A stretch of 64,000 nt of DNA from Phaeosaccion multiseriatum (Eukaryota; Protista; Ochrophyta, other classes). Numbering within the stretch: position 1 is the first letter of the stretch; every line of letters starts with the position of its first letter. The notes under the pieces are model-generated. The model saw nothing but the letters and a program-made list of their open reading frames with translations. It was not told the DNA's origin and ran no database searches. Position numbers and translations under genes: made by a program. The stretch is taken from the NCBI GenBank assembly GCA_965112735.1, contig OZ218957.1, positions 620,001 to 684,000 of the forward strand. Reading direction: 5' to 3'. This document shows positions 6,100 to 36,786 of the stretch, piece after piece.

Positions 6100-11372
<5,273 letters not shown>

Positions 11373-17101: not shown

Positions 17102-17818
17102 TTACGCGGAGGGCCGGGCGCGCCTCCAGCCCCGCTCCTCCCCTTCGCTGGAGCTGCTGCTACTGCCGCTGGACACGTAGCGCTGACGAGCTCTACGGGA
17201 TGCCTTGCTGCTGCTGCTGCTGCTGCTGCTCGTGGTGCTGCTGATGCTGCTTCTACCACCGGCACCATCCACTGTCCTCTTCACTTTCGACTTCTTTGTT
17301 GTCGTTGTTGTTGTTGTTGTCGACGTCCGCCTCTCGCTCGGTCTCTCTGCTTTGCTGCTTCGACCGCCTGTCGCCGCCTGGGTAGTACTACACGTGCTGC
17401 TGTTGCTACCTCTCCTGTCTTTGTCTCTACTGCTCCTCTTTGGAAGTGGGGCTTCCTCCTCCTCAACGTCGAGACTACCTTCTTCATGACTTAGAGAGCC
17501 ATCATCACCGTACTCCTCCTCCTCCTCCTCCTCCTCCTCCTCCTCTTCCCCATGGTTGTCCGACTCTGGCTCGGAGATCTCTGCATCAGAGGCCTCTCCA
17601 GAAGGCGGGTAGGAGCCAATGTCTGAGCTCGAAAGCGAGCCCTCCTCACTGCTTCCCCGCGCCTGCGGTGAGGAGTCTCGCTTGCCCCCTCCCTCCTGCC
17701 GGTCCTCCTCCTCGTCCCCGTCTTCTTCTCCTCCTTCTCCTCCTCCTCCTCCTCTCCCCCCTACACCCTCCTCCTCCTCCTCCTCCTCCTCCTCCTCCTC
17801 CTCCTCCTCCTCCTCCTC

Positions 17819-17853
<35 letters not shown>

Positions 17854-20800
17854 CCCCCCCTCCTCCTCCTCTTCCTCTTCGTCCTCTTCATCTCCGGCGG
17901 CAGAGTCGTAGGCCTCATAGGGCGCGTCGGGCTTCTCCCATACGCTCTCCTCTGTCACCGTGTTAAAGTAAAAGTACGTCTGATGGGTCTCATCAAAGCC
18001 CTCAATCCACACCGGACCATCCTCATCTTCCCCTTCCCCTTCCCTTCCCTCTCCCCCCTCCCCCCCACCCTCCTTCTCTCCTTCACTTAGAGACTGCCCA
18101 TGGTCTGCTGACCCTTGAGTATGCTCTTCCCACGCCTCTGAGTCGTCTCGGTCGCCTCTCAGTCGCTCCGCTGGGGAAGCTTCCATCGTTCCCTCCCACT
18201 CGTCCTCCTCCTCCCCTCCCCCCTCCCCCTTCTCCTTGTCCTTCCCATCAGAGTCTTCGTGCCCATCGGGGGGTAGATCGGGTTCGAAGTAGTCCTCCTC
18301 ATCCTCCTCTTCCTCGGAATTGAAGATGTCACTCGGCACACCATCGCCCTCTTCCTCCTCCCCCTCCTTCTCTCCACCGTCTTTACCTTTGCCTTTGCCT
18401 GACAGACTAACTCGCACACGCCCATGCCCCTCGGTCTTCTTCCCCCCGTCACCCTCGTCATCAATGTCACCATCCAAGTCGTCGCCGTGCTGTGATGATT
18501 GCGAGTGAACGGTGCTAGCCTTATCGTGGTCGCTATCGTGACCACTGGTAGCGGCGTCGTCGTCGTCGTGCTCCTCCTCTCCCTCGCTTTGCTGTTCACT
18601 CTCACTATCGTCCGAGTCGGAGGCGAGGGGCTCAGCCACCTTCTTGCTCGCCAGCCTCTGCCGCAAACGCTGTCCTGCTGTCAGTTTGAGGTCCACTCTT
18701 CCCCCCCCTCCCTGCTCCTCCCCGTCTTCCTCCGCGTCCTCCTCCACCTCCACCTCCACCTCCTCCTCCCCCTTCTTCTCCTTCTTCTCCTCCTCTTCCT
18801 CCTCCTCCTCCTCCTCGTCGTCGACATCTGTATGTTCCAGAACGTCGCTCCCGTCCTCTGCAGCCCGCTCCTTCGTGCAGAAGGTGTCGTCTTCGTCGTC
18901 GCCAACCCTTACCTCTTCTTCTTTGACCACCGGCACCCCTCCGTCGTCTTGCTGCTTCTTCTTCTTCTGCTCCCCACGGGTCTCCTCCTCCTCCCCATCC
19001 GCAGTCGTGCCACCACTGCTTGTGACAGGGGAAGTAGTGCCCCCCACCCCCTCCTCCACCTTCACCTCTACTTCCATCTCGCCCTCCTCCCTCACCTGCC
19101 TCAACTCCGCGGCCTGAATGGCGGCCATGATCTCTGACTGCTGCCCGATCCATCCCACGTACTGCTTCAGCGCCGGACTGTTGGGCTCCTCCTTCTCCAT
19201 AACGAGCAAGAGACTGCGCATGGCCGCCTTGACGAGTGCGGCCCTTCTGGATGCCTCCATGGTCAGCGCTCGTCGCTTATCCGAGTGCGCACAGAATGCC
19301 TCTTCTCTCTCCCTCTCCTTTAGCGAAGCAGCAGCAGCAGCAGCTCCTCCTTCGCCGCCGCCACCACCACCACCACCACCACCACCCTCACCTTCCTCAT
19401 CTTCATCATCGTCTTCGTCTTCATCCTCCAACAGACCCATGCCAGCAACGGTAGCACGGAACTCAGCCAGCCTCACCTTACCCTGCCCATATGCCTGCTG
19501 CTGTATCACCAACTGCTGTTGCTGTTGCTTCCCGTCCTCGTCCCCACCCTTGCCTGCCTGGCCTGGGCAGAGGCTCAACAGCACACCAAGCGCTGTGGCT
19601 GCTGTCTGCGTCTCTTGGCGCTTGTCCTCCAGCCAATCGTTGAAGGCGCACTCCTCCAGAAACTCCGCTGTGGTGCTGTTGGCAGTATTCGCATCGTCGC
19701 CAATCGCTGCTGCAACAGTTTCAGTTTCAGCTTGTTGCCCCTTTCCTCCCTCTCGTCGCCCCCCACCTCCCAGTAAGCTATCCTCACCACCACCACTCCT
19801 ACTAGGGGGGAGGCTGAGGGAGGGGGAGGAGGCCGTTGCTACGGCTGCTCCTCCTCCTCCTCCTCCTCCTCCTGCTGCTGCTGCCGCTGCTGCTGCTTGG
19901 TTGCTACCTCTGTGACCAGCCTCTCGCGCCCTCGCCAGCCGCTCCTTGACCGTCAGGGTCAGAGGGTCGAACATCTCCTCACCCTTGGAAGGAGAAGAAG
20001 AGGAGGAAGAAGGCATGGGCATTGTCTGAGACGCCCATTCCTTCCCTCCTCTCCCACTGTTGGAACCGCCACCACCAACCATGTGGCCGCTGGACCGAAG
20101 GACACCCCCCCGCCCGGCCGCCTTGGTGGGTGAGGAGGAAGCCGCCAAGCTGCTTCCTCTCCTGCCCCAGGGCGGGTCGAGCTCAAAGGTCCGCCCGAAC
20201 ACCACCTCCTTACAGATGGAGCGAGACCTTCCTCGCTGCTGCCCCTCGTGACTGACCACCCCAGTGGCACTCCTGTGAGCAATCGGCCTTGCCAGCTCCG
20301 CGTCTCTCTCCCGTTGCCCCTGGGGACTCCTCCTCCTCCCCGCTCCTCCTCCTCCTCCTCCTGCCCCCCCCCCTCCTCCTCCTCCTCCTCCGCTACCCCC
20401 CCTCGTCCCCGACATGGTTGCGGCCATCGCCGCCGCCGCCGCCGCCGCCGCTTCCTCTCTCTCATAAGCTGCCATCCTCACGGCCTCATCCTCCCTTCGC
20501 TTCAGCGACTTGGCCCACTCATTGGAGCGCTCTTCGTCTCTCCTCAGTTGTTCGCGTGCAGACAGCCGTTGTCTCTCTCTCCCTCGTTGCGCTCCTCCTC
20601 CTTCTCCTCCTCCACCACCAAGGGTGCGTCCAATCGAAGTAGTAGCAGCAGCAGTGGTCATGGTGGCGGCGGCAGTCGTGGCAGAGAACCATACCCCCAC
20701 ACCTACAGTACTTCCCAGACCTCCTCCTCCTCCTCCTGCTCCCCCTCCCCCTCCTCCTCCTCTTCTTCCTCCTCCTCCCCTCGCACTCGGCGGCAAAGGA

Positions 20801-23800
20801 CGATCGTCGACCGATCGTACGTGTGGCAAAAGACCAATGAGGGTGGGGCGGTAAGCAGGGAGAGAGGCGAGGGCGTTCCCAGCCAAGACCAAGTCGCGCA
20901 ACTTGCGATTGAAGCTGAGTGGTCTCACCGCCATTGGGTTGGCAATGGCGTTGTCCCCCAAGTTGAGGTGCTCCAGACTACCGAGGTGCTCCAGACCGGC
21001 CACTTGTTTGATGCTGTTGCCCTCGAGGTTGAGAGCGATGAGCTGACTGCACCCAGCAAGGGCGGTGCCGATCTTTGTGAGCCGATTGTTGGATGCGTTG
21101 AGGGTCTGCAGCGTCTGCGGCAAGTAGTACCTGGCCGGCTGCTTCTGCTTACCACCACCCTCTCCTCCTCCTCCTCCTCCTCCTCCTCCTTGTTGTTGTT
21201 GTTCGTCTCCTTCTTCCCCTCCGGGTATTGGCGCCAAACGACACAGGAGGTTGTTGCTGACATCAAGATGTCTCAGCTGCGGCAGGCTGCGTAACACGGC
21301 CCCGTCCAACACTTGCAACTGGTTGCAGCTTAGCACCAACGTGTGCAGCTGGGCGGGCGAAGACGAGCCCAAGCCCAAGCACTCCTCCATAGCCAGTCCG
21401 ACGTGGGGTGCCATCCGGTCGAGACCGACTCCGGACATGATGAGAGCCCCGTCCTCCACACGCACCACAGATGGCGGCGACGCAAAGCCCTCTTCTCCCT
21501 CCCCTCTCCCCCTCCCCCTCCCCCTCCCCACCCCGCCCTCCCCCTCCCCGCTGAAGCATGACATGCCGGTCATGGCCATGGTGAGGGCGAGATCCTCCTC
21601 TCCATCGTCGCCATCTGCATGCCCCCCGTGCTTGCCCCGCCCCTTCTTCCGCTGGTGCTGCTGCCGCTTGTGCTTCTTAGCGTCGTCGTCGTCGTCTTCG
21701 TCCTCGAACGAGGAAGAAGAAAAGATGGAGTCCGGGCTATCTTGTCCATCCTGCTGTTGCTGCTGTATCACCAACTGCTGCTGCTGCTGCTGGCGGTGGC
21801 CGCGTAGGTCTTCCAGAACGGCATGGGATGCACTGAATTCTGTGGTTCGCCACACCTTGTCCCCCTCTGCCCCACCAGCACGGGTCGGCGAGGAGGAGGG
21901 GAAGTAGGCAGTAGGAGGCGGGGTTTGGGGGCGGTGGTTTCCGCGTCTGCTTACTGACGTAGAGGCGAGACCCTTGGGACTGAGGCAGCCCGGCTTGCGC
22001 TGCAAAGCTGCCTTATCCACAACCACCTCCTCCTGAAGCTGCTGTATCACCAACGGCTGCGGTTGGCTGTCTCGATGATGACCGACGACGTCTGAGGATG
22101 CCTGATGCTCCACGGGACTGCACCCCCCCCCACCATCTTCGCTCCCGTCCAGCAGGGCATCCGCAGCAGTTGGTCGTACGCTAAAGGCGCTACCTTTCCT
22201 CCCATTGCCCCCTATCTGCTGCTGTATCACCAACTGCTGCTGCTGCTGCCTCGTTCGGTCGTCCTCCAACAGAAGATCAAAGGCCCCGCGCCCGTTCACA
22301 GCGCAGTCACTTTGACCCTCATCCGCAGCAGTTGGTGATTCAGCGCGTCTCGACGCCTGTCGCTGGCACTGACGCTTCTGCTGCATCACCAACTGCTGGG
22401 GATCGCTCGAGTCGGCCTGTGAGCTCAGCGACGACTTGCGAACAGCGTCTCGGAGCTTGGCCCACCGAGATTGCCCCCCAGGGGAGGCCTTTGCCTTGGA
22501 AAGACTCTTTGACGAACCGTTGTGAATCTTGCTACCGCTGCTGCTGCCATTGCTCTCATAGTGGCTTTGCTGCCGCTGCTGGTGGTTGTGGTGGTTGCGA
22601 TGGTGCTGGCGGTGTTGATGGTGGTGGTGGTGGTTCTGCTGCTGGTGATGGTGGTGAGCGTGGTGATGATGCTGATGCGGGTGCTGCTGGTGTTGGTGAT
22701 CCCGACTCTCCACAGTGAGTGTTGGCGACGGCGGCCCGTTGGAGTCCCACAATACCTTGTTGTTGGAGCCGTAACCGTCGCCATGCGCACCCGCGCCCTT
22801 GTTGCCTGTGTGGCTCGAAGAGGCGATTCGCCCCCCGCCACGAGGAGACCCAGCCGAGTGTCTCCCTCCTCCTGCCCCTGCTACCGCGGCCGCTGCCACC
22901 GGCGACCGAGGCGAATGCGAGTGTGGGTGCGCGTGTGCCTTCCCACCCCTCTGCTGCGGCACCGGAAGAACCTCGGAGCCGTCGGAGTCCTCCGACGCAA
23001 AAAGAATATCGTCCTCACTGCGCTGCATCGTAGTCTGGAGGTCCACGCCACTGGTCGTTTTGACGCGTAGGCTGCCATCGCCGTCTCTCGACGGCTGCGA
23101 GGCCTGCTCTCCGTGCGGCGGCTGTATCACCAACTGCTCTGCGTTTTTCTCCCCCTCCTCCTCCTCTGTGTCGCTGTACATGGTCTCCAAATGGCTTCTG
23201 GAAGTCTCTGCGGAGGACGAAGGACCAACACCTGCAGCAGCACCCTCTGCAGACGAGGATGCAGTCGTCGAACTGCTACCGTTCCGCGGCTGCTTCTTCC
23301 CCCCCGTGGCAGCCCTCTGGTTGCCGCCAATCTGTGCGCCAACAGGCAGAGACGCCGCTCGCACGTGCCCCCGTCCACCAGCAACCCCGTTCGTGGCCGC
23401 AGCAGTGATGCTGGCTTTTGCTGTATCACCAACTGCTTCTGCTGCCCTTGCTACTTGGCGGCTACTGCCCCCCCCTCTACGGCTTTTGATGCTGTTCACA
23501 CGAGCTGTTGCGTCCACCGGCGCCCCCTCAACCCCGTCCGTCTTGGTCTGTACACCGTTTGCTGCCACCATCGCGTCCATTCTGCCTTGCCCCCTGCCGC
23601 CCCCCTCCTGGGGCTTTTCACCACGCCCCTCTCCATCCCCCTCACCCTTCCCCTCCTCGCTGTCGCCCGCCCCCCCCCCCTCCTCCTTCTCGTCGTGGTC
23701 GTCGTCGTCCTCTTCATTGAACGACATCTCACAGTCGAAAGACGTAGACTCCCTAACGCCCCCTCCTTCTTCCTCCCGCACCCCCCTCCCCTCCTCCTCT

Positions 23801-25597
23801 CCTGCTCCACCTCCTTGACTGACCTCCTCTAAGCTATGCTTCTGCTCTCCCCCTACCTCTTCGCCGTCATCCCCCCCCTCCCCCCTCGTGGTTCTTTGCC
23901 GGCTGAAGCCTCCTCGATCTCCCCCCGCTCCTGCCGACCCCCCCTCCAGCTTTCCTCGGCAAGAAGCCATGCCTCTCTGGCGACCACTCCCATCACCAAC
24001 ACCCTCACTACCCAACAGATCGCCGTCGTCCCTCACGTTTAGACTCAGCCCCCCCCAGCGATCGGAGCTCTCCCTCTTGGTCCCTGGCAGAGACATGGGA
24101 GAGCTGCTCAACTCTTCGGGCAAACCATGACCCAGGCCGGATGTCCCTGCTCCTCCTGTATCACCAACTCCTCTAGCTGCTATATCACCGACTGCAGCTC
24201 CTGCTGTTTCCGCCGCGGCACTCTCGTGCAGCAGTGGTGGGTGTGCTTGGGAGTGGCCGAATACCCACTGCTCCTGCTCTCGTCCCAAGAACGGCAAGCG
24301 CCTGCTCTGGCGAAGGCGATTCACCATGGCGGTCTCAAACCCGCTGAGTCCTATGCACTGCTTGGCCCCCATCGAGGAGCGGCGCCGGGGGGAGAGGCTG
24401 GCATCTTGATTTCCCCCCACCCCTCCTCCTCCTCCTCCTCCTCCTCCTCCTCCTCCGGAAGGCACACCATAGGTTGATATGACTTGAAGGGGCTCGTTCT
24501 TCTTTATGGTCGTTCCTAGCACGGCTTTCATGGCGGGCCCGAGCTCGGTGGGGCCTAACATTGACCCACCGCTACTGCCGTTGAGCTGCTGCTGCTGCTC
24601 CTGCTGCTGCAGGGAGGGTCGCGTGTTGGTGGTACGGCTAGAACTGCTGCCAGCACTGCCCTTGCCGCCCCGTCCGGCGGTGTTGGTGAAGAACACATGC
24701 CGGATGTCGAGGAGGGAGTCGCACGTCTGCAGGACCTGACACAGCTCCGTCAAAGTCCCCAACAGCCCCCCCCCCCCCTCCTCCTCTGCTCCTGCGCCGC
24801 TTCCTCCTCCTCCTCCGCCACCCCGCTTGCCACCACCACCACCAGCACCAGCACTACCACCGCCTCCTTGCGTCACAGACCCAGTGCTATCAAAGTTCAG
24901 ACCAGAGCTCCCCCCGCCACTGTCCAGCTTGAGGCCGTAGCAGAAGCTGAGGTCATTGCAATCCTCTGGGGTGGCCTCGGGCCCCACCTGGGTGCGCCAC
25001 ACTTCCAGCTGATCCTCCAGCAGCTCCGCTAGCGCACGCACACCCACGATGGTGAGGCTGGGGTTGCCTCGTAAGTCCATCTTACGCACCACTGGCAAGA
25101 CCCTCAGCACATCAGCCAGCACCTGAGGGGGGAAGAACAAGGAGGCGCAACGAGAGAGAGCTGAGTGGGAAATTGGTTCCCAAATCATCGTTGGCTGTGT
25201 CCCTCCCAACCCTTAGGCCTCAAAACCAACCCGAGCTCCCCCCCACCATATACTTGTCTCCCTCCGAATCCGCGAAATAGCAAAGCCACGACGGCTACGA
25301 AAAGCTCCCCTTCCCCCCTCCTGTCGCACTCACCTCGACATGGCCGTCCTCCAAGCCGCACTTGCGCAAGTCCAGCTTGTAGAGCCGCATGCTCCCATCC
25401 TTGGCGCTCGAGGCTCGGAGAAGCTCCTTCTGCAGCTTGGGAGGTAGGATGAGCTGCCTCTCCTGCGCCTTGGCCAAGAATTGCTCCTGAAAGCGCTTGG
25501 CTTGGTCCAGGGGCATTTCCCGGGCTGCCTTCCGTTGACGGTCCCGGTTCTTGTTAACCCCCGCCCCCGACAGCGAGAAGCTGAAGGTCCCCGTCAT
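17102..25597 (-). CDS. Giant (~2700 aa) largely disordered protein with N-terminal RNI-like LRRs, central SDS22-like LRR block, coiled coils and a WW domain; exon 1 25334-25597, exon 2 ~25122 to 17102 with an apparent 1-nt frameshift in the C19 run at 17842-17860
   Basis: LYKLDLRKCGL, RKMDLRGNPSL; LRHLDVSNNLL, LQTLNASNNRL, LIALNLEGNSI, LEHLNLGDNAI, cap YRPTLIGLLPHVRSVD; WW WIEGFDETHQTYFYFNTVTEESVWEKP; acidic frame continues stop-free to TAA at 17102. Confidence 0.8.
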
Positions 25598-26857
25598 GGT
25601 GGGGCCTCTCCACTGCCTGCCTTCTCTCTCCCCCTCCCCAAAGAGGGTAAAATAATTTTTCTCTCGCCGTTACACGAAACAAAATCGATTTTCGAGCGAA
25701 AAAAATCGACTCGATTTTCGAATCGGACGATCTCCTTCGTTTTTACCCTCTTATCGTTTTTGGATGTAAGATGGAGCCTTACAAATCGAGAGCATTGTTG
25801 CGAGGGAGACGAGGACGTCGAGAGAGGGCGGTCCGCGCTACTCTGATGAGGAGGTCACTCGCTACTGCACACGTGACCCGTTCATCAACCGCAGCAGTTG
25901 GTGGTACATGACGAGGAGGGGAAGCAAAGACGCTCCACTTCGAATGGCACGGACCTGTTGCCCAACGAAGAGCCAAGCTCCTCGCGGAGGTGTGCGCTGG
26001 AGGACTGACAGACCCTTCCCTGTGATGCCCTTCCTTGAGAGGCCCTTTCTCAGCTCCCAGCCACAGCCAAGCTCGCGCCGGGCCCCGTGGACGTGTGCAG
26101 AAACCCATCAGTCAGCAGGCAGGTGCCGCGTGAGGGGGGCGAAGACGTGCACTTCGCTCCGATTGTGCAGCTTCGGAGGCGAGGCGGCTCTATTTCCAAA
26201 GCGCAAAAGCAAAGGGGAAGCGCAAGCAAGTAGGCGGGTACTTCAACATCGCTTCCCCATCGCCACCCCCGCAACTACCACTCGTTCCTCCCCAACCATC
26301 ACCACTACCATCATCATCGTCTTGTTACCATTATCATCGTCTTGTTCGTGTACAGGCCAGAGCACCACATGGCCTGCCTGCCCACCCCACCGTGAAGCGT
26401 GAAGGGGCCGTGGGGGCGGCCGGGAACAGCTCGAGGCGTGTCAACTCCCCCCGCCTCTTTGCTGCCCCTACCCGGTATGCGTGCGTCTTGGCTCTCTCGC
26501 TCTCTCCGGCCTGAGGAGACAGCAAGCCCACCCAGGAGATGCGGTGGCTTCCTTTTACGTGTGTCGTCGCCGTCGGACCCCTCCTTTGAACCGTCAACTG
26601 GGCCTGCTGCGGCACGTCACTGGCTGGCTCTCGACCGGGCAGCCCAGCACTCTCCGGGCGGGACTTTAAAACGGACCACAACCCAGCCGCAGCCAGGCAG
26701 GCGTGGCATTCAGAGAGAATAGCAGCCAACAGGTGTATTTATTGATCTAGCCTAGTGTAGTGTAGTGCCGAGGGGAACGCCCTCCGAGGATCCCAAAGTG
26801 AGCACTGCCGACTGCCGAGAGAGTCTAGTGCTCACGCTGACTGCCAAGAGCAAGAAA

Positions 26858-29800
26858 ATGTCGGGCGTGCGGACGGGCGAGCGGGAAGCACTCGTGGCTT
26901 TCTTTCTCTCCACGAACGGTACCACGGCTGGACAAGAAGGCTGCGGCATACATGCTGTAGGCTGGTATATGGAAGGATGGAATAGCGCCACACCCGTGAG
27001 CGACTGGCACGGTGTGAGTGTGAAGAGCGAGACCATTACCAGGCTCGAGCTGAAAGCAGTAGAGCTAATGAGAGGTGAGGCAGGAAGGCCCAAGCAAGAA
27101 GAAGGAGCGACCTTCCCCACACTTTTGGCTGAGCGCGGCCCCAGTACTTATGTTAGGCACATTATTTCGGTTCCCCTGCCTCCGCCTCCCTTCTAATGCA
27201 CTCTGCGGGAGCAGGCCCCATCCCGCCGCCGCTGGGAGACCTCAAGAGCTTGCAACATCTGTGCCTGGAAAACAACCAGCTCAGCGGTGAGTGGGGAGGA
27301 GTCTCACTCATGTCCCTTCCGTTGAAGATGCTGGCCTATGTGAACTGAAGAACCTTGCTTCTGTACCCTCTGCAGGCCCCATCCCGCCGGAGCTGGGAGA
27401 CCTCAAGAGCTTGCAAGTGCTGCGCTTGTCGAACAACAAGCTCAGCGGTGAGTGGGGAGGAGTCTGAGTCATCTCCCTTCGCTTGAAGATGCTGGCCTAT
27501 GTGACTCGAAGAGCCTTGCTTCTATACCGTCCACAGGCCCCATCCCGCCGGAGCTGGGAGACCTCATGAGCTTGCAAGAAGGGCTGTGGCTGGATGAAAA
27601 CCAGCTCAGCGGTGAGTGGGGAGGAGTCTCCCTCATATATGTTCTTTCGCTTGAAGATGCTGGCAGGTGTGGACTGAAGAATCTTGTTTCTGTACCCTCT
27701 GCAGGCCCCATCCCGCCGCAGCTGGGAGCTCTCAAGAGCTTGAAAGAGCTGCGCTTGTCGAACAACAAGCTCAGCGGTGAGTGGGGAGGAGTCTCACTCA
27801 TGTCCCTTCGCTTGAAGATGCTGGCCTGTGTGAAATGAAGAGCCTTCCTTCTGTATCCTCTGCAGGCCCCATCCCGCCGGAGCTGGGAGACCTTAAGAGC
27901 TTGCAGCAGCTGCACCTGGACAACAACAAGCTCACCGGTGAGTGGGGAGGAGTCTCAGTCATGTCCCTTCGCTTGAAGATGCTGGCATGTGTGAACTGAA
28001 GAGCCTTCCTTCTGTACCCTGTGCAGGCCCCATCCCGCCGGAGGTGGGACACCTTAAGAGCTTGCTAGTGCTGTTGCTGGAAAACAATCAGCTCAGCGGT
28101 GAGTGGGGAGGAGTCTCAGTCATGCCCATTCGCTTGAAGATGCTGGCCTACGTGAAATGAAGAGCCTTGCTTCTGTACCCTCTGCCTGCAGGCGCCATCC
28201 CGCCGGAGCTGGGAGAACTCAAGAGCTTGCGAGGGCTGTGGTTTGAGAATAACGAGCTCAGCGGTGAGTGGGGAGGAGTCTCACTCATATATGTCCTTTG
28301 AACTGAAGAGCCTTGCTTCTGTACCCTCTGCAGGCACCCTCCCACCGGAGCTGGGAGATCTCAAGAGCTTGGAGCAGCTGCGCCTGAACAGCAACAAGCT
28401 CAGCGGTGAGTGGGGAGGAGTCTCAGTCAGTCATGTCCCTTCGCTTGAAGATGCTGGCAGGTGTGGACTGAAGAACCTTGCTTCTGTACCCTCTACAGGC
28501 CTCATCCCGCCGGAGCTGGGAGACCTCAAGAGCTTGCAACAGCTGCACCTGGACAACAACAAGCTCAGCGGTGAGTGGGGAGGAGTCTCAGTCAGTCATG
28601 TCCCTTCGCTGGAAGATGCTGGCATGTGTGAACTGAAGAATCTTGCTTCTGTGCCCTCTGCAGGCCCCATCCCGCCGGAGCTGGGAGACCTCAAGAGCTT
28701 GCAACAGCTGTTCCTGTGGGGCAACCAGCTCAGCGGTGAGTGGGGAGGAGTCTCACTGCTTGAAGACGCGGGCATGTGTGAACGGAAGAACCTTTCTTCT
28801 GTACCCTCTGCAGGCCCCATCCCGCCGGAGCTGGGAGACCTCATGAGCTTGGAGCAGCTGCACCTGCAAAACAATCAGCTCAGCGGTGAGTGGGGAGGAG
28901 TCTCACTGCTTGAAGATGCGGGTCTGTGTGAACTGAAGAGCCTTTCTTCTGTACCCTCTGCAGGCCCCATCCCGCCGGAGCTGGGAGACCTCATGAGCTT
29001 GGAGCAGCTGCACCTGCAAAACAATCAGCTCAGCGGTGAGTGGGGAGGAGTCTCACTGCTTGAAGATGCTGGCCTATGTGAACTGAAGAGCCTTGCTTCT
29101 GTACCCTCTGCAGGCCCCATCCCGCCGGAGCTGAGAGAGCTCAAGAGCTTGCAAGGGCTGCACCTGCAAAACAATCAGCTCAGCGGTGAGTGGGGAGGAG
29201 TCTCAGTCATGTCCCTTCGCTCGAAGATGCTGGCCTATGTGAACTGAAGAGCCTTGCTTCTGTACCCTCTGCAGGCCCCATCCCGCCGGAGCTGGGAGAC
29301 CTCAAGAGCTTGCAAGGGCTGTTGCTGGAAAACAACCAGCTCAGCGGTGAGTGGGGAGGAGTCTCACTGCTTGAAGATGCTGGCCTATGTGAACTGAAGA
29401 GCCTTGCTTCTGTACCCCCTGCAGGCCCCATCCCGCCGCAGCTGGGAGAGCTCAAGAGCTTGCAAGGGCTGCACCTGCAAAACAATCAGCTCAGCGGTGA
29501 GTGGGGAGGAGTTTCACTGCTTGAAGATGCTGGCATGTGTGAAGTGAAGAGCTTGCTTCTGTACTCTCTGCAGGCCCCATCCCGCCGGAGCTGGGAGACC
29601 TCAAGAGCTTGCAAGTGCTGCGCTTGACGACAAACAACCTCAGTGGTGAGTGGTGAGGAGTCTCACTGCTTGAAGATGCTGGCATGTGTGAACTGAAGAA
29701 CCTTGCTTCTGTACCCTCTGCAGGCCCCATCCCGCCGGAGCTGGGAGACCTCCAGAGCTTGCAACAGCTGTACCTGGACAACAACAAGCTCAGCGGTGAG

Positions 29801-32800
29801 TGGGGAGGAGTCTCAGTCAGTCATGTCCCTTCGCTTGAAGATGCTGGCAGGTGTGGACTGAAGAACCTTGCTTCTGTACCCTCTACAGGCCTCATCCCGC
29901 CGGAGCTGGGAGACCTCAAGAGCTTGCAACAGCTTAACCTGGACAACAACAAGCTCAGCGGTGAGTGGGGAGGAGTCTCAGTCAGTCATGTCCCTTCGCT
30001 TGAAGATGCTGGCAGGTGTGGACTGAAGAACCTTGCTTCTGTACCCTTTACAGGCCTCATCCCGCCGGAGCTGGGAGACCTCAAGAGCTTGCAACAGCTT
30101 AACCTGGACAACAACAAGCTCAGCGGTGAGTGGGGGGGCGGGGGGGGGTGGTGTAGCTTCCGTCATGTCCGACACTTCTCGCTCCTCTTCTGTAGTGCTT
30201 CAGCAAGTTGAGGGAGGAGGGCCTCGTGAGAGTGGTGGACGACGAAGCACTCTCCCTTCGACTCCATCCAACATGACTCTGTCTCTGCCTTTCCCTATGG
30301 CTGTCCGGGGAATTGGTTGTGTCCCCCCTTTGCTTGGCAGAGTATCCCGCCTTGACGGCAGAAAAGATCGATTGTTTGGAAAGAGAGGGTTGCCGTTTAA
30401 GCCTAGAGGGCAACCCATGGTCTCGCCCCCCCGGAGACGTCGTAGCACAAGGCAGGGGTGCGATCGTGGCGTGGTGGAGAGACATCGAGGCCTCGGGCTC
30501 CGTCAAGTCTAGCAAGCTCAAGGTGGTGCTCGTCGGTGCGGGCGCGGCGGGGAAGACGAGTCTGACGAGGGCACTCACGGGCGAGGGAGAGAAGCTGCCC
30601 ACGAGGGAGGAACAGACCATCGGGGTGGATCGGAGGAAGACCGTGCGGGTCGCTGACTGCTTCAAGAGGCACTGCCTTGTTGGCGGGGTAGAGCCGTACC
30701 TGGAAGGGCTGCCGGCTGAGGAAGAGGATCGAGCGTCGATTAGGGCCACGGCACGGGACCTCGCCTTGGTAATGTGGGACTTTGCCGGACAGGAAGCGTA
30801 CTTCAGCCACCACCAGACCTTCCTCACGGCCTACGCACTCTTTGTGCTCGTGGTTGACCTGCCTGCCTTCCTGGAGAGAAACAATGAGGCGCGGGATGCA
30901 GCAGTACACGAAGAGGCGCACGACGCCGACTTTGCCCACGAGCAGGAGATATCGCTCTGGCTCAGCATGCTGGACAAGAGAGTGAAGGACTGTCACGTGG
31001 TCGTTGTGGCGACCAAGACCCACGGGATGACCGACGAGGAAACGGCGGACGGCAAGGAGAAGCTTACGGCGGCGGTCATGGCGGCAGCCACGCGACTGAA
31101 AAGACGGAGGGAGGAGTTCGCCAGAGATTTCAAGGAGAGCCGCCTCCGCTCTCAGCAGGAGCAGCAGCAGCTAGAGGGAGACCTTGAGGACGAAAAGGGT
31201 TCATCCATCGGTGCGGAGTATGTGTATAGCACAGGCGTCACTATTCTGAAGTGTGCGGGTGGTCAGCAAGTCCCTGTGTTGGTGGACAGCAAGGAGGAGT
31301 GTGGCGTCGGTGAGGTGTTGCTGCATTTGACGAGAGCTGTGCACGACAAAAAGACCGCCTTCCCCAGCGTGGATGCGTCTATCCCGAAGAGCTGGGACGA
31401 GGCTATGGACTTCCTGGTGAGGCAGTCTGTGACCCGCAGCTTCGTGGAGTGGAGCAAGGTGGTGCAGGAATGGAAAGAGTTGAAGGAGAAAGAGGAGGCA
31501 AGCGGGTCTGTGGGGAAGGAATCCCCCATGCTTGCGGAGGGAGAAGCGACGAAGGAAGGCGGAGGAACTCCTGAGGAGATACTGTGGCAAGCTGCGCACC
31601 TGCTGGAGCGGCAGGGGACGATGCTGTTTACCAACGAGGGGAGAGTACTGCATCTGAAGCCGGAGAGGGTCATTGACCTTCTCAAGCCCATCGCAGACCA
31701 CCGCATCACGACGAAGGGGCTGGGGTTCTGGAAGCCCAGGATTAAGAGATACTTAATGGAGACACAAGAATATAGGTCTTCACGGACGACAGAGGAAGTG
31801 TGGCAGGAGCTGATTAAGCTGCGAGACTTTGGCATTCTTCACGAGAGAGTGCTGGAATTTCTTTGGCTATCGTGGACACCAATTGATGGGAGGGAGGGGA
31901 AGAGCAGCAGCACCTCCGGTCGACGCGAATCGGGGAAGCAGCAGGAGGAGGAGCAGCAGCAGCAAGATGAGGAGGAGGCTACGAGCACCTTTCTCTCCGA
32001 CTTGCGGGGGCAGGATCCAGACGCGCAGAGCAAGCGAGAGATCATGCGCGGTATGCTTGTGGAAAGTGGGGCTCTATATACTGCCCAACACAACGACACA
32101 GAAGAGAGTCTGTACTGGGTCCCTTCGCTGCTCGAGATGTGGGTGGACAAGGGGCAGGTCGAGGACGCTTTCCGCCTGTCCGCAGGGCAGAAAATGAGCA
32201 GATGCGCCATCGTGTTGCCCGGTCAGCCCTTCGTTCCACCGGGCCTCATGCCTCGCATCGTGGCGGCGTGTATGAGGGAGGCGAAGAGGGAGAGTGATGC
32301 CTCCCGCACGAGCTCCTGCGAAGTGAACCTATGCTGGCGCTACGGAGTGGTGCTCTTCTGGGGCACGGAAAGGGTTCTCGTGTACCACTCAAAGGGCCAC
32401 CGCACCGCCAACAACAGTGGCACCAGCGAAATCAATCTCAACAACACTCGCCGCAAGAGCATCCACGAGGGCAGAAAGCGTAAGGCGAGTGTGAGCAGCA
32501 GCGAAGAAGAAGAAGATCAAGAAGAAGGAGAAGGAGGAGAAGCGGGTGGAGCAGTGGTCGAGTGGTGCGTGCTGGGCGAGAATGCCTCGGAGTGCACTCA
32601 GAAGGCAAACAAAGTGGTGCGACCCTGCATTCTTGACGTACTGGAGAGGGACTTCCCCGGGCTCGACTTTACAGAAGCACTGCCCGGCATGGTCAAGTGC
32701 GACATAAAAGCCGCACTGCACTCACTGGAGCAGCACATGGACACCCGGATGGACGTCATCGAGAATAAGGTGTGCAAGATTGTGGAGGCGACCCGAGGCA

Positions 32801-34131
32801 TCGAGAGCTTCATCCGGTTGAGCTGCGAAAAGGACATGCCCTTCCCTGCCCTCGCGGTGCTTCTCCCTGAGGGGCATCCAATGCTGAGCAACGGAGGCTT
32901 CGCGGGTGCTGAGGAGCGAAAGAACACAGCTCCTGCCGGTGGGGGCAACCACCAAAAGGGTCTCGACCTCTTCCAGAAGCGAGCGTGGGAGTGGGCCAGA
33001 GGGACTGTGGTTAAGAAGTACCGCCTCTTCTTTCTGTGCTCGCACGACCTCAGCGTGGTGCCCACTGGGCCAGACGGGCAGGGCTACGAGGTGCCCATGC
33101 CCAAAGAGTGGCTCAAGAAGGCCGCACCCCTGCTTAAGCTGTCGCTGCTGGCCCTCAAGGTCGCTGCCAAGTGTGCCGTGGGCATTGATCTGCCCATCGG
33201 CGGAGTCTTTGATACTCTAAGCGAGAGTGCCGTGGAGGGAGTGAGCGAGGAGGTCGAAGAGAGAATCGATGACATTTTCGAGGAGGCAGACCACCACTCG
33301 GCGGAGGAATTCATGCGATACGAACATGGAGCCACCCACGCCAGTGCTGCTCTAGAGGTGGAGGACGACGGAGGAGACCAAGAGGAGAAAGGCGAGAAGC
33401 TGCGGCGGCCTTTCTCCCGCAAGGATGTCGACTTTGGGCCCGCCTACAAGGCCTACCTGGCCTTCCTCGAAGCGAAAGCGGCCCTGCTGAGCGAGACTCA
33501 TCACAAGACGCACATGGTGCTTTTGGAGGGAGGCACCGAGGACTCGTGGGCGTGGGTGAGGAAGGCAAACGCGGAGGAATGGAAGGAGACGCACGATGGC
33601 ACAGGCACAAGAGCACAAAGTGCGGACAGTGGTGGTGGTGCTGTCGCACCTTCGGCCCTCAATGGGGCTGCTGATAGCGTCGTCGTGGGAGGAGGAGGTG
33701 GTGACGCGGTTACAGCGTCAGGAGCACCACCCCCCTCACCAGCCCCTCCACCACCACAGGAAGCGCCCGCTTCCGTCGGACATGAGCAGGCGGAGACAGG
33801 GACAAGAGGAGCCTTGACAGCAGAAGCAGAGGGGGACTCGGAGGGACAAGACATCCGGAGATGGCTGCAGGAGGTGAGCTTCAACCCCAAGAGACTCGAC
33901 GCTGTGGTGGATCTGCTCGTGGACAATGACTGCGACTCGCTCAAGACTTTGGACAGCCTGGGGGATGCCTATGTGGAGGGCCTACTGCTGAAGGGGTTCA
34001 GCAAAACCGTCGTCATTAGCTTCATGTCCTACCTCCAGCAGCGCAAGCGCAGCTCCAGAGGCTTCTTCCAAAGGATGTTCGGAGGCGGAGGAGGAGGAGC
34101 AGGAGGAAAGAAAGTAGTGGCCACCGCATAG
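26858..34131 (+). CDS. ROCO family LRR-Roc-COR GTPase: N-cap exon 26858-27074, 19 single-LRR exons, terminal exon 30341-34131 (Roc, COR, C-terminal region, possible SAM-like domain)
   Basis: LRR N-cap EREALVAFFLSTNG...W...VSDWHGVSV; 24-aa LRRs GPIPPELGDLKSLxxLxLxxNxLS; LEGNPWSRPP; P-loop VVLVGAGAAGKTSL, TIGVD, WDFAGQE, VVATK; all junctions are phase 1 and join in frame. Confidence 0.93.
27215..30125 (+). repeat. Tandem array of 19 exon+intron units (period 142-168 bp); exon starts 27215, 27376, 27537, 27705, 27866, 28027, 28192, 28334, 28499, 28664, 28814, 28964, 29114, 29275, 29425, 29574, 29724, 29889, 30054
   Basis: Each exon 72 nt (one of 75 nt) bounded by cag|GC... and ...G|gtgagtgg; introns 70-93 nt share gtgagtggggaggagtctca...ttgaagatgctggc...gaactgaagagccttgcttctgtaccctctgcag. 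Confidence 0.97.
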
Positions 34132-34136
34132 TGGAA

Positions 34137-34175
34137 GTCTATCACGCGCCCAATCCAGTCTATCACGCGCCCAAT
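34137..34175. repeat. 18-bp direct repeat GTCTATCACGCGCCCAAT x2 just after the ROCO stop codon
   Basis: Direct inspection. Confidence 0.8.
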
Positions 34176-35230: not shown

Positions 35231-36403
35231 CTAACTTTCCGGGAGGCGTACTTTCGCGCACAGGGTCTCAAAAGCCTTCTGCGCCACGGAGTCCATTTTG
35301 TGCGGCCTTTTGGAGCCAACTGCAGCGTGTGGAGGGACCTCCATAAACCGCGGCTGCACAAAGTACGTGCCGGGCCCGCCGAAGAGGATGGGCACGAGGA
35401 CATTGAACGGGCGTTGGCGTTGAGAGGCCAGCAGCACTGGAGAGTGTGTCAGGTCGTAGTGGTTGCGGAGATGAAATTCCTTGTCTTCGGCCGGCACGTT
35501 CTCCATTGCCTCCAATTCTTTGATGACTTCGGAGACGGGGCGGACCTCAAAGCGGGCAAAGTGGAGAATCTTTCCTCGATCAGTGCCCATGGACATCCAA
35601 ACCTGGATAATGTGTGTCTTGTGACGGGGCTTGGATGATCCAATGCGCAGTGCGTTGACCAAGAAGGATTGGAAGACGGTCATGTCTTGGTCACAAAAGG
35701 CATTGATCTGGCGCTTGAGGAAGCCTTCCAGCATCTTGTTGTTGTTGTTGTCTGCGCGAAACAGAGAGGACTCTAACTCAATGGTGTTCAAGAGTGCCAC
35801 GACATCGTCCCATGTGTGCCGCTGAAAGCTCTCCTCAATCACCCTGACGGGTACCACGACAAGCTTGTCATCGTTCAGACAAATAAGGAAGTGTATGTAT
35901 CCGGTGACGGCGGTAGTGCTGCTGTTGAAGTACTGTTGCACCATCTGTTCCAGGTTCGTACCATCCTGCAGCATTGGTGCCGCTGCCAAAGACATCCACT
36001 CTGGTTTCTCTGAAGGGACATAGGTGTGTCGATTTCGGTCCAACTGCAGTCGCAACAACAAAAACTCCTTGGGCGGCTGCTCCGTGAGCTGTGCTCTCGA
36101 TCGTAGCATGCTCCCCACTAACAAGTTCAACACGCCCCGTGCCTGATCACGCCATCGGTGAAAGAGACGAAGGGATTGCGCCCCCCCTGGCTTCTCTTTT
36201 GCCCGCTCCTTCGCGACCCGCGCGGACAAGCACCGCGGTTTGTGCTGTTTCCAATGTGCTTTTTGACACTCTCGACCGCAGTAGGGTGCCACTTTGCAGG
36301 CGCTGCAGCGCAACATATCGCTGTTCACATTTGTCCTCATGCAGTTGGAACAGGTAATATATGCGTCCAGCTTTCCATACTTGCCGTCCTTGCTGCTGCT
36401 CAT
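35231..36403 (-). CDS. Intronless MYND-type zinc finger protein with uncharacterised C-terminal region
   Basis: CSNC...LRCSACKVAPYCGRECQKAHWKQHKPRC MYND signature; first ATG at 36403 (MSSSKDGK), stop at 35231-35233. Confidence 0.85.
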   Translation of the reverse strand: MSSSKDGKYGKLDAYITCSNCMRTNVNSDMLRCSACKVAPYCGRECQKAHWKQHKPRCLSARVAKERAKEKPGGAQSLRLFHRWRDQARGVLNLLVGSMLRSRAQLTEQPPKEFLLLRLQLDRNRHTYVPSEKPEWMSLAAAPMLQDGTNLEQMVQQYFNSSTTAVTGYIHFLICLNDDKLVVVPVRVIEESFQRHTWDDVVALLNTIELESSLFRADNNNNKMLEGFLKRQINAFCDQDMTVFQSFLVNALRIGSSKPRHKTHIIQVWMSMGTDRGKILHFARFEVRPVSEVIKELEAMENVPAEDKEFHLRNHYDLTHSPVLLASQRQRPFNVLVPILFGGPGTYFVQPRFMEVPPHAAVGSKRPHKMDSVAQKAFETLCAKVRLPES

Positions 36404-36786
36404 GCTTTTTACGTTCCGGCTGATGTTCAACTCTGCGGTCGCTGTCCTCCTCTTCGGCCGATGTTCTCCTCTCCAGTCGCTGTCCTCCTCTCCGGTCACT
36501 GTTCCCTTCGTCCACACACACGAATCCTTCCTTCTTCCCTACCCTAGCAAGCCACACTCTCCATGATGTCTCGTCCGTGTTGTTTGTGAGGAGCGAATCG
36601 ATTTGATTTTGCGAGGGTCCCTCCCAAATGGCAACACTATCTGGAGCACCAACGCGTACCCTTCTCAATAAAAGTACTCTCAAGACCGAAAAGGGACTAT
36701 AGCAGCAAAGGGAGGACAGCAGCAGGAGCAGCAGGAGGAGGAGGAGGAGGAGGAGAGGTAGCTGTAACAGCAATAGCCTGGAGGGT

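Follow-up and report, generated by a model that had tools for sequence, protein, structure and literature searches.

A ROCO GTPase gene with nineteen one-LRR exons in Phaeosaccion multiseriatum, a candidate innate receptor

How does a gene come to hold nineteen leucine-rich repeats (LRRs) that share one framework and one kind of intron and differ at a few codons, and over what timescale does such a set change? The question is raised by an LRR-Roc-COR gene in a 64,000-nucleotide stretch of Phaeosaccion multiseriatum DNA (assembly GCA_965112735.1, contig OZ218957.1, positions 620,001 to 684,000; hereafter the window), where it occupies positions 26858-34131 of the + strand in 21 exons. With a probability of about 0.7 we read it as a receptor array that owes its diversity to unequal crossover, gene conversion and selection acting over generations, in a candidate innate receptor. 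The evidence for selection and for exchange between the repeat units is given first, followed by the domains and relatives of the gene and by the alternatives.

Variable codons and exchange between the cassettes

The joined reading frame of 1792 amino acids has no internal stop, and all 20 introns are bounded by GT..AG and lie in phase 1. Between an N-cap exon and one long last exon stand the 19 LRR exons (Table 1), 18 of which are 72 nt long; unit 3, with an additional codon that keeps the frame, has 75 nt. A first-pass annotation, made by a model from the letters alone, had proposed this one-LRR-per-exon, phase-1 ROCO with 19 cassettes interchangeable in frame, and the open frame and the symmetric exons agree with it; all 14 motifs that it quoted for the exposed x positions of the repeats are present, and a 15th (QGLHLQN) was found besides. 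Tandem Repeats Finder reports a single array (period ~150, 18.5 copies, 85% matches), and the window contains 19 copies of the donor motif, where 0.01 would be expected. The introns had also been described as nearly invariant and the units as ~150-165 bp long. It may be noted that the array introns (n=18, 70-93 nt) do look alike, but only to ~90% (mean p-distance 0.095), with indels and five length classes (70, 77/78, 89 and 93 nt), and that their almost fixed part is the first 18 nt only; the repeat is compact as stated, but its exon+intron units range from 142 to 168 bp. No microsatellites were found within the array introns, as had been claimed, in a window that is overall rich in them.

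Codons 14, 16, 18 and 19 of the repeat were set beforehand as test sites from earlier work (PMC11378527, PMC3341825), and the placement of the variable codons on the concave face was taken from published models, the folded model used here excluding the LRR solenoid. The pairwise proportion of non-synonymous differences (pN) is 0.47 at these four codons versus 0.06 at the scaffold codons; the proportion of synonymous differences (pS) is 0.12 for the scaffold and the intron distance is ~0.10, the overall pS of 0.16 being elevated by the variable patch. A fixed-site codon model gives an omega of 3.89 at the four codons versus 0.56 elsewhere (p 3e-5), and M2a is preferred over M1a (p 0.006), with posterior values of 0.97-1.0 for codons 14, 16 and 18 and of 0.54 for codon 19. 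The excess of non-synonymous over synonymous change at concave-face codons on which the first-pass annotation had staked its case is thus found. Because recombination can inflate tree-based tests, a tree-free count of extra alleles per site was used as well. It gave 1.9 for positions 1+2 of codons 14/16/18/19 versus 0.56 for introns (p 3e-4), and 0.56 for introns versus 0.53 for scaffold third positions (p 1.0). Diversity of the variable LRR face thus exceeds what the neutral rate would give, and conservation of the introns is on a par with that of the scaffold's silent sites. Ordinary concerted evolution therefore explains the likeness of the introns. A special constraint on the introns was also considered and ruled out on the same match.

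The units were then compared for signs of exchange. Among informative site pairs 56% are incompatible, close sites being more compatible than far ones. The PHI test gives p ~0.001, and with one site per codon the median lies at 0.01-0.015 and the worst draws at 0.05-0.19. Divergence between units is independent of array position (Mantel p 0.35, 0.76), and the variable codons show no joint variation with the following intron (Mantel p 0.20) and a partial one with the preceding intron (p 0.005). One identical tract of 153 bp runs from the end of exon 8 through the intron into the first half of exon 9, and again from the end of exon 17 through the intron into half of exon 18; it is a recent conversion or duplication between non-adjacent units. 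The pattern of the units is that of tandem duplication plus short-tract conversion, in keeping with the concerted evolution and recombination between units that had been supposed from the letters.

Table 1. Coordinates in the window of the gene's exons, introns, domains and shared tract.
Feature	Position	Strand	Basis or remark
Exon 1: start codon and LRR N-cap, 72 codons + 1 nt	26858..27074	+	joined frame; N-cap homology
Intron 1, 140 nt, phase 1, outside the repeat	27075..27214	+	
Cassette array: 19 one-LRR exons, 18 look-alike introns	27215..30125	+	repeat finding, frame, donor motif
LRR exon 1	27215..27286	+	QHLCLEN
LRR exon 2	27376..27447	+	QVLRLSN
LRR exon 3, 75 nt	27537..27611	+	QEGLWLDE
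LRR exon 4	27705..27776	+	KELRLSN
LRR exon 5	27866..27937	+	QQLHLDN
LRR exon 6	28027..28098	+	LVLLLEN
LRR exon 7	28192..28263	+	RGLWFEN
LRR exon 8	28334..28405	+	EQLRLNS
LRR exon 9	28499..28570	+	QQLHLDN
LRR exon 10	28664..28735	+	QQLFLWG
LRR exon 11	28814..28885	+	EQLHLQN; identical to exon 12
LRR exon 12	28964..29035	+	EQLHLQN
LRR exon 13	29114..29185	+	QGLHLQN
LRR exon 14	29275..29346	+	QGLLLEN
LRR exon 15	29425..29496	+	QGLHLQN
LRR exon 16	29574..29645	+	QVLRLTT
LRR exon 17	29724..29795	+	QQLYLDN
LRR exon 18	29889..29960	+	QQLNLDN; identical to exon 19
LRR exon 19	30054..30125	+	QQLNLDN
153-bp identical tract	28392..28544 = 29782..29934	+	units 8/9 vs 17/18, 1.4 kb apart
Last intron, 215 nt, phase 1	30126..30340	+	shares only the donor with array introns
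Last exon, open frame of 1262 codons	30341..34131	+	
Roc core	30520..31030	+	Pfam Roc E 4e-12; motif positions
COR domain, approximate limits	31363..32660	+	family profile and structure-model match
Small C-terminal domain, SAM-like candidate (weak), last 85 residues	33820..34074	+	Atlas SAM clusters 0.76-0.81, below trust line

Domains, relatives and sequencing runs

Homology searches were run exon by exon, and the joined model was used for the frame, for hydropathy and for a local comparison with five proteins. The last exon encodes, in this order, an LRR C-cap, the Roc GTPase, COR, a conserved post-COR region, a low-complexity linker and a C-terminal helical domain up to the stop. Roc is matched by Pfam PF08477 (46.7 bits versus a cutoff of 27), and its best PDB matches are Roco proteins (archaeal, bacterial) and LRRK2. 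Motifs G1-G3 are intact (P-loop GAGAAGKT at 30535, switch I Thr at 30616, DFAGQ at 30778). G4 reads TKTH at 31012 (31009-31023), where relatives have T[HK]xD and the family consensus is THxD, the usual, guanine-specifying Asp being replaced by His although the gene is otherwise intact. In an RNA-like contig of sample S2 (30561-30614), six differences fall within 11 bases (30604-30614) just before the switch I Thr, possibly a conversion patch or a variable spot in Roc. Pfam COR gave no match in the last exon, which is usual for brown-algal ROCOs (PMC11378527). The family profile aligns with LRRK1/2 through COR. Single-sequence folding failed (pLDDT 38), and an alignment-based structure model (pLDDT 63.5) was used instead, which matches RocCOR 3dpu (E 1.8e-10) and the COR-only chain 3dpt of C. 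tepidum (E 1.6e-4), and COR follows directly after Roc. Together these matches bear out the LRR-ROCO identity given at first reading. The SAM identity of the C-terminal domain is unconfirmed, with no Pfam or PDB sequence match, and a hydropathy scan of the joined model showed no transmembrane anchor of note. A perfect 21-bp tandem duplication lies right behind the stop codon (34136-34175).

A word-index search for homologues with Roc-COR returned four distant matches only, and a HMMER search of representatives gave the real relatives. The nearest proteins are ROCOs of Chrysoparadoxa australica (best match, E 2e-55), Hapterophycus, Cladosiphon, Ectocarpus and Pylaiella, and the homology to the brown-algal and Chrysoparadoxa ROCOs extends through the post-COR region. 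The N-cap exon is homologous to that of a Chrysoparadoxa ROCO (32% identity, E 9e-9), and the borders of the 72-nt LRR exons recur in loci L001-L005. On the Roc tree (a quick tree, no bootstrap, with the query on a long end branch) the query falls inside a 29-row clade of brown-algal and Chrysoparadoxa ROCOs with an SH-aLRT of 94. The gene is an intact LRR-Roc-COR gene of the brown-alga type, in a related ochrophyte with short introns.

Five sequencing runs contain the stretch, all as contigs, a form in which exon skipping or variation from cell to cell would not be visible; since contig depths were summed, array depth was not read as a copy number. Three DNA runs from one sample cover the unique flanks. 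In exon 1 and Roc they carry variant contigs whose depth is that of a single copy and which are most simply close paralogues, and the DNA of this sample holds further LRR-exon families sharing the donor end. In one paralogue (27040-27175) exon 1 has three differences and intron 1 is 86 nt shorter, and a second diverges at 27039. A further run, X5, belongs to another sample and study with the library type unrecorded. It behaves as RNA: each of its six array pieces starts or stops at a splice site, give or take one base, the loose ends consist of letters of the neighbouring exon and the introns are uncovered. The cassettes of this ROCO family are thus spliced exon to exon. X5 also has Roc contigs, at 96% and 99% likeness, whose differences do not occur in the DNA of the first sample, and two of its junction ends (PIPQE, LNNNELS) are absent from the array at 27215-30125. 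The X5 contigs may be another allele of this gene with other cassettes or a paralogue, and they are not assignable to this locus.

Around the gene, a divergent neighbour on the - strand (17761-25599), 1.26 kb upstream, is a low-complexity open reading frame of 2482 codons in one exon, with LRRs not split into exons and a C-terminal WW domain; a convergent neighbour on the - strand (35231-36517) has a MYND zinc finger. A Sec23 exon (Pfam) lies at 6583-7611, its best named match being Phaeothamnion confervicola (71%, length-limited search). A bacterial promoter scan was empty and is irrelevant here.

How the array may have diversified

Each LRR is a symmetric phase-1 exon, exon+intron units have duplicated and traded pieces, and selection has diversified four concave-face codons, the scaffold codons and introns drifting together at equal low divergence. 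In the mechanism that we propose, unequal crossover and conversion between units, probably also between close paralogues, would over generations alter how many repeats there are, how they are ordered and what surface they present, and selection would retain new repeat surfaces. The short introns would be passengers and no dedicated recombination signal, though they make the unit well suited to recombination. The product may be a cytoplasmic sensor, in which the LRR solenoid would bind a variable non-self ligand or a guarded partner and signal via the Roc-COR switch; we infer both the immune function and this sensor role.

Several points weigh against such a receptor array. No ligand or immune role has been shown for any algal ROCO (PMC3341825), and the RNA-like contigs do not tie expression to this particular locus. 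Judged from the motif, the His in G4 leaves the GTPase activity and nucleotide specificity of Roc uncertain. The codon-model tests assume a tree and may be inflated by recombination, the tree-free count being the safer guide. Finally, germline and within-clone timing cannot be read from one assembly.

A different source of diversity would be combinatorial exon skipping, by which one allele would yield many LRR subsets with a Dscam-like outcome; we consider it unlikely as the main source. All exons are symmetric, the look-alike splice sites impose no obvious order, and Ectocarpus ROCO splice variants with differing LRR content have been reported (PMC11378527). Yet 19 of the 19 exons have strong intact splice sites and no stop, unlike mutually exclusive clusters. 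Intron folding is no stronger than in shuffles (mean z +0.66), and no intron with its flanks shows a folding excess; there is thus no signal of intron hairpins as splice regulators, nor of docking/selector-type pairing (long-range docking-site pairing was not tested). Introns of 70-93 nt also favour splicing across each intron.

The array might also be a neutral minisatellite, a coding repeat recently expanded in a non-immune GTPase, with the variable codons under relaxed constraint. The recent duplications (exons 11=12 and 18=19) and the degenerate G4 motif of Roc would fit. It would fit too that ROCO proteins, LRRK2 for example, have roles in trafficking and signalling. Nevertheless we regard it as quite improbable, since diversity at the amino-acid-changing sites is 3.4-fold that of the introns beside them, more than relaxed constraint can bring about, and the same four codons are under selection in brown algae (PMC3341825, PMC11378527).

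Programmed or somatic rearrangement, whereby the cells of a clone would rebuild the array by targeted conversion as in lamprey VLR, is very improbable: the units are mosaics, many near-identical cassettes exist elsewhere in the genome (the paralogous contigs), a low-depth contig joins 27807 to 27967 and the hypothesis was raised for Ectocarpus (PMC3341825), but the gene is complete and is no empty germline locus, the introns have no recombination signal beyond neutral similarity, no report of a somatically recombined ROCO locus is known (PMC11378527), and the orphan cassettes envisaged in the first-pass annotation were not found, there being no orphan or inverted cassette outside the array in the 64-kb window and the introns being too short to hold one. 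The contig in question (depth 2.4 versus ~60) amounts to a one-unit deletion seen in 1 of the 3 same-sample runs with 29 letters on its short side, and it is no evidence of rearrangement, as an error, a chimera or a paralogue would give the same. A clonal rewriting of the patch of codons 13-21 from other cassettes, at a high and possibly induced rate, would give a single-celled or simple alga a VLR-like somatic repertoire and is just as hard to credit.

Known systems and what the gene adds

The exon-cassette ROCO design is already published for brown algae, and this gene is a new example of it and no new kind of system. In Ectocarpus ROCOs, Zambounis et al. found type I LRR exons of 72 nt, intra- and intergenic recombination and concave-face selection; they compared the system with VLR and did not settle its timescale (PMC3341825). 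Teng et al. found the same in four brown algae, with splice variants and no known somatically recombined locus (PMC11378527). The brown-algal LRR-ROCOs (Ectocarpus, Saccharina, Cladosiphon, Nemacystus) have the N-cap and one LRR per 72-nt exon as here, and share with this gene the codons at nt 3-71, the GxIP..LxxLxLxxNxL consensus, Roc-COR, the post-COR region, selection at codons 14/16/18/19, exon recombination and membership of a multigene family. In contrast to them, the introns here have 70-93 nt instead of hundreds, Roc-COR lies in one exon, and one homogenised intron class runs throughout the array; judged by gene style and neighbouring genes, the host is also no brown alga. In Ectocarpus inverted or silent intronic LRR exons are frequent (19 loci) though not universal, whereas this window has none. 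At the Ectocarpus sp. 6 ROCO locus L003 (2529-10646), five of the 12 LRR exons are inverted, all of them intact, and two of these five are placed outside the LRR block (10314-10646).

The compact homogenised exon+intron unit had been thought unusual at first reading, which does not hold. The Chrysoparadoxa ROCOs CAM9859843.1 and CAM9907097.1 (L001, L004) have the N-cap exon, 72-nt exons, GTGAGTGG donors and a single long Roc-COR exon as here. Their introns measure 64-95 nt and show 84-93% likeness within a gene, and the intron+exon unit of L004 is 87% alike to that of L001. They differ in having few cassettes on short contigs and an intron sequence unrelated to this array, and one ROCO carries a TIR end, unlike this gene. 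This LRR-ROCO-TIR gene (L004 55-3416) is annotated as two genes, and one 147-nt exon of L004 has an island ahead of its LRR. No paper describing these Chrysoparadoxa genes was found. In the Hapterophycus canaliculatus ROCO CAM9290372.1 (L002 80-3702), nine exons of one LRR each form tandem units whose introns (271 and 337 nt) are 90-96% alike, but there are two alternating unit types, introns of 271-585 nt and little exon diversity within a type. Two of its introns, of 585 and 579 nt, each consist of two fused intron types, as the loss of an exon would produce.

Among more distant systems, the fungal HNWD NLRs (het-d and het-e, Podospora) show concerted evolution, four hypervariable selected codons and repeat gain, loss and shuffling (PMC12222747). 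They work alike, except that non-self recognition is proven there and for this gene only supposed, and that their repeats are intronless WD40 units with a NACHT domain and are not homologous. In Tetrahymena LRR arrays, unequal crossover and conversion scramble exon/intron units with 90-bp exons (PMC6564038). These are likewise one-phase tandem units in a unicellular eukaryote, but with 90-nt phase-2 exons, thousands of genes, a retrotransposon link and no Roc-COR. Lamprey VLR is built of modular LRR cassettes whose concave face varies, and insect Dscam1 has many symmetric exons in one gene. As against VLR, the gene here is complete and no flanking cassette library is seen in the window; as against Dscam1, no mutually exclusive cluster or docking sequence is seen.

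The sensor array is 2.9 kb long with unique flanks, and therefore one long-read amplicon spans it; the question of timescale, open since 2012 between germline recombination, alternative splicing and somatic rearrangement, is thus cheap to test at this locus. The exon-cassette ROCO design, and with it a large family of genes of this kind, exists outside brown algae, in this genome and in Chrysoparadoxa. Unicellular relatives were reported to have four or fewer ROCOs, and the expansion was tied to multicellularity (PMC11378527). If the present alga is unicellular, this link between ROCO expansion and multicellularity would weaken.

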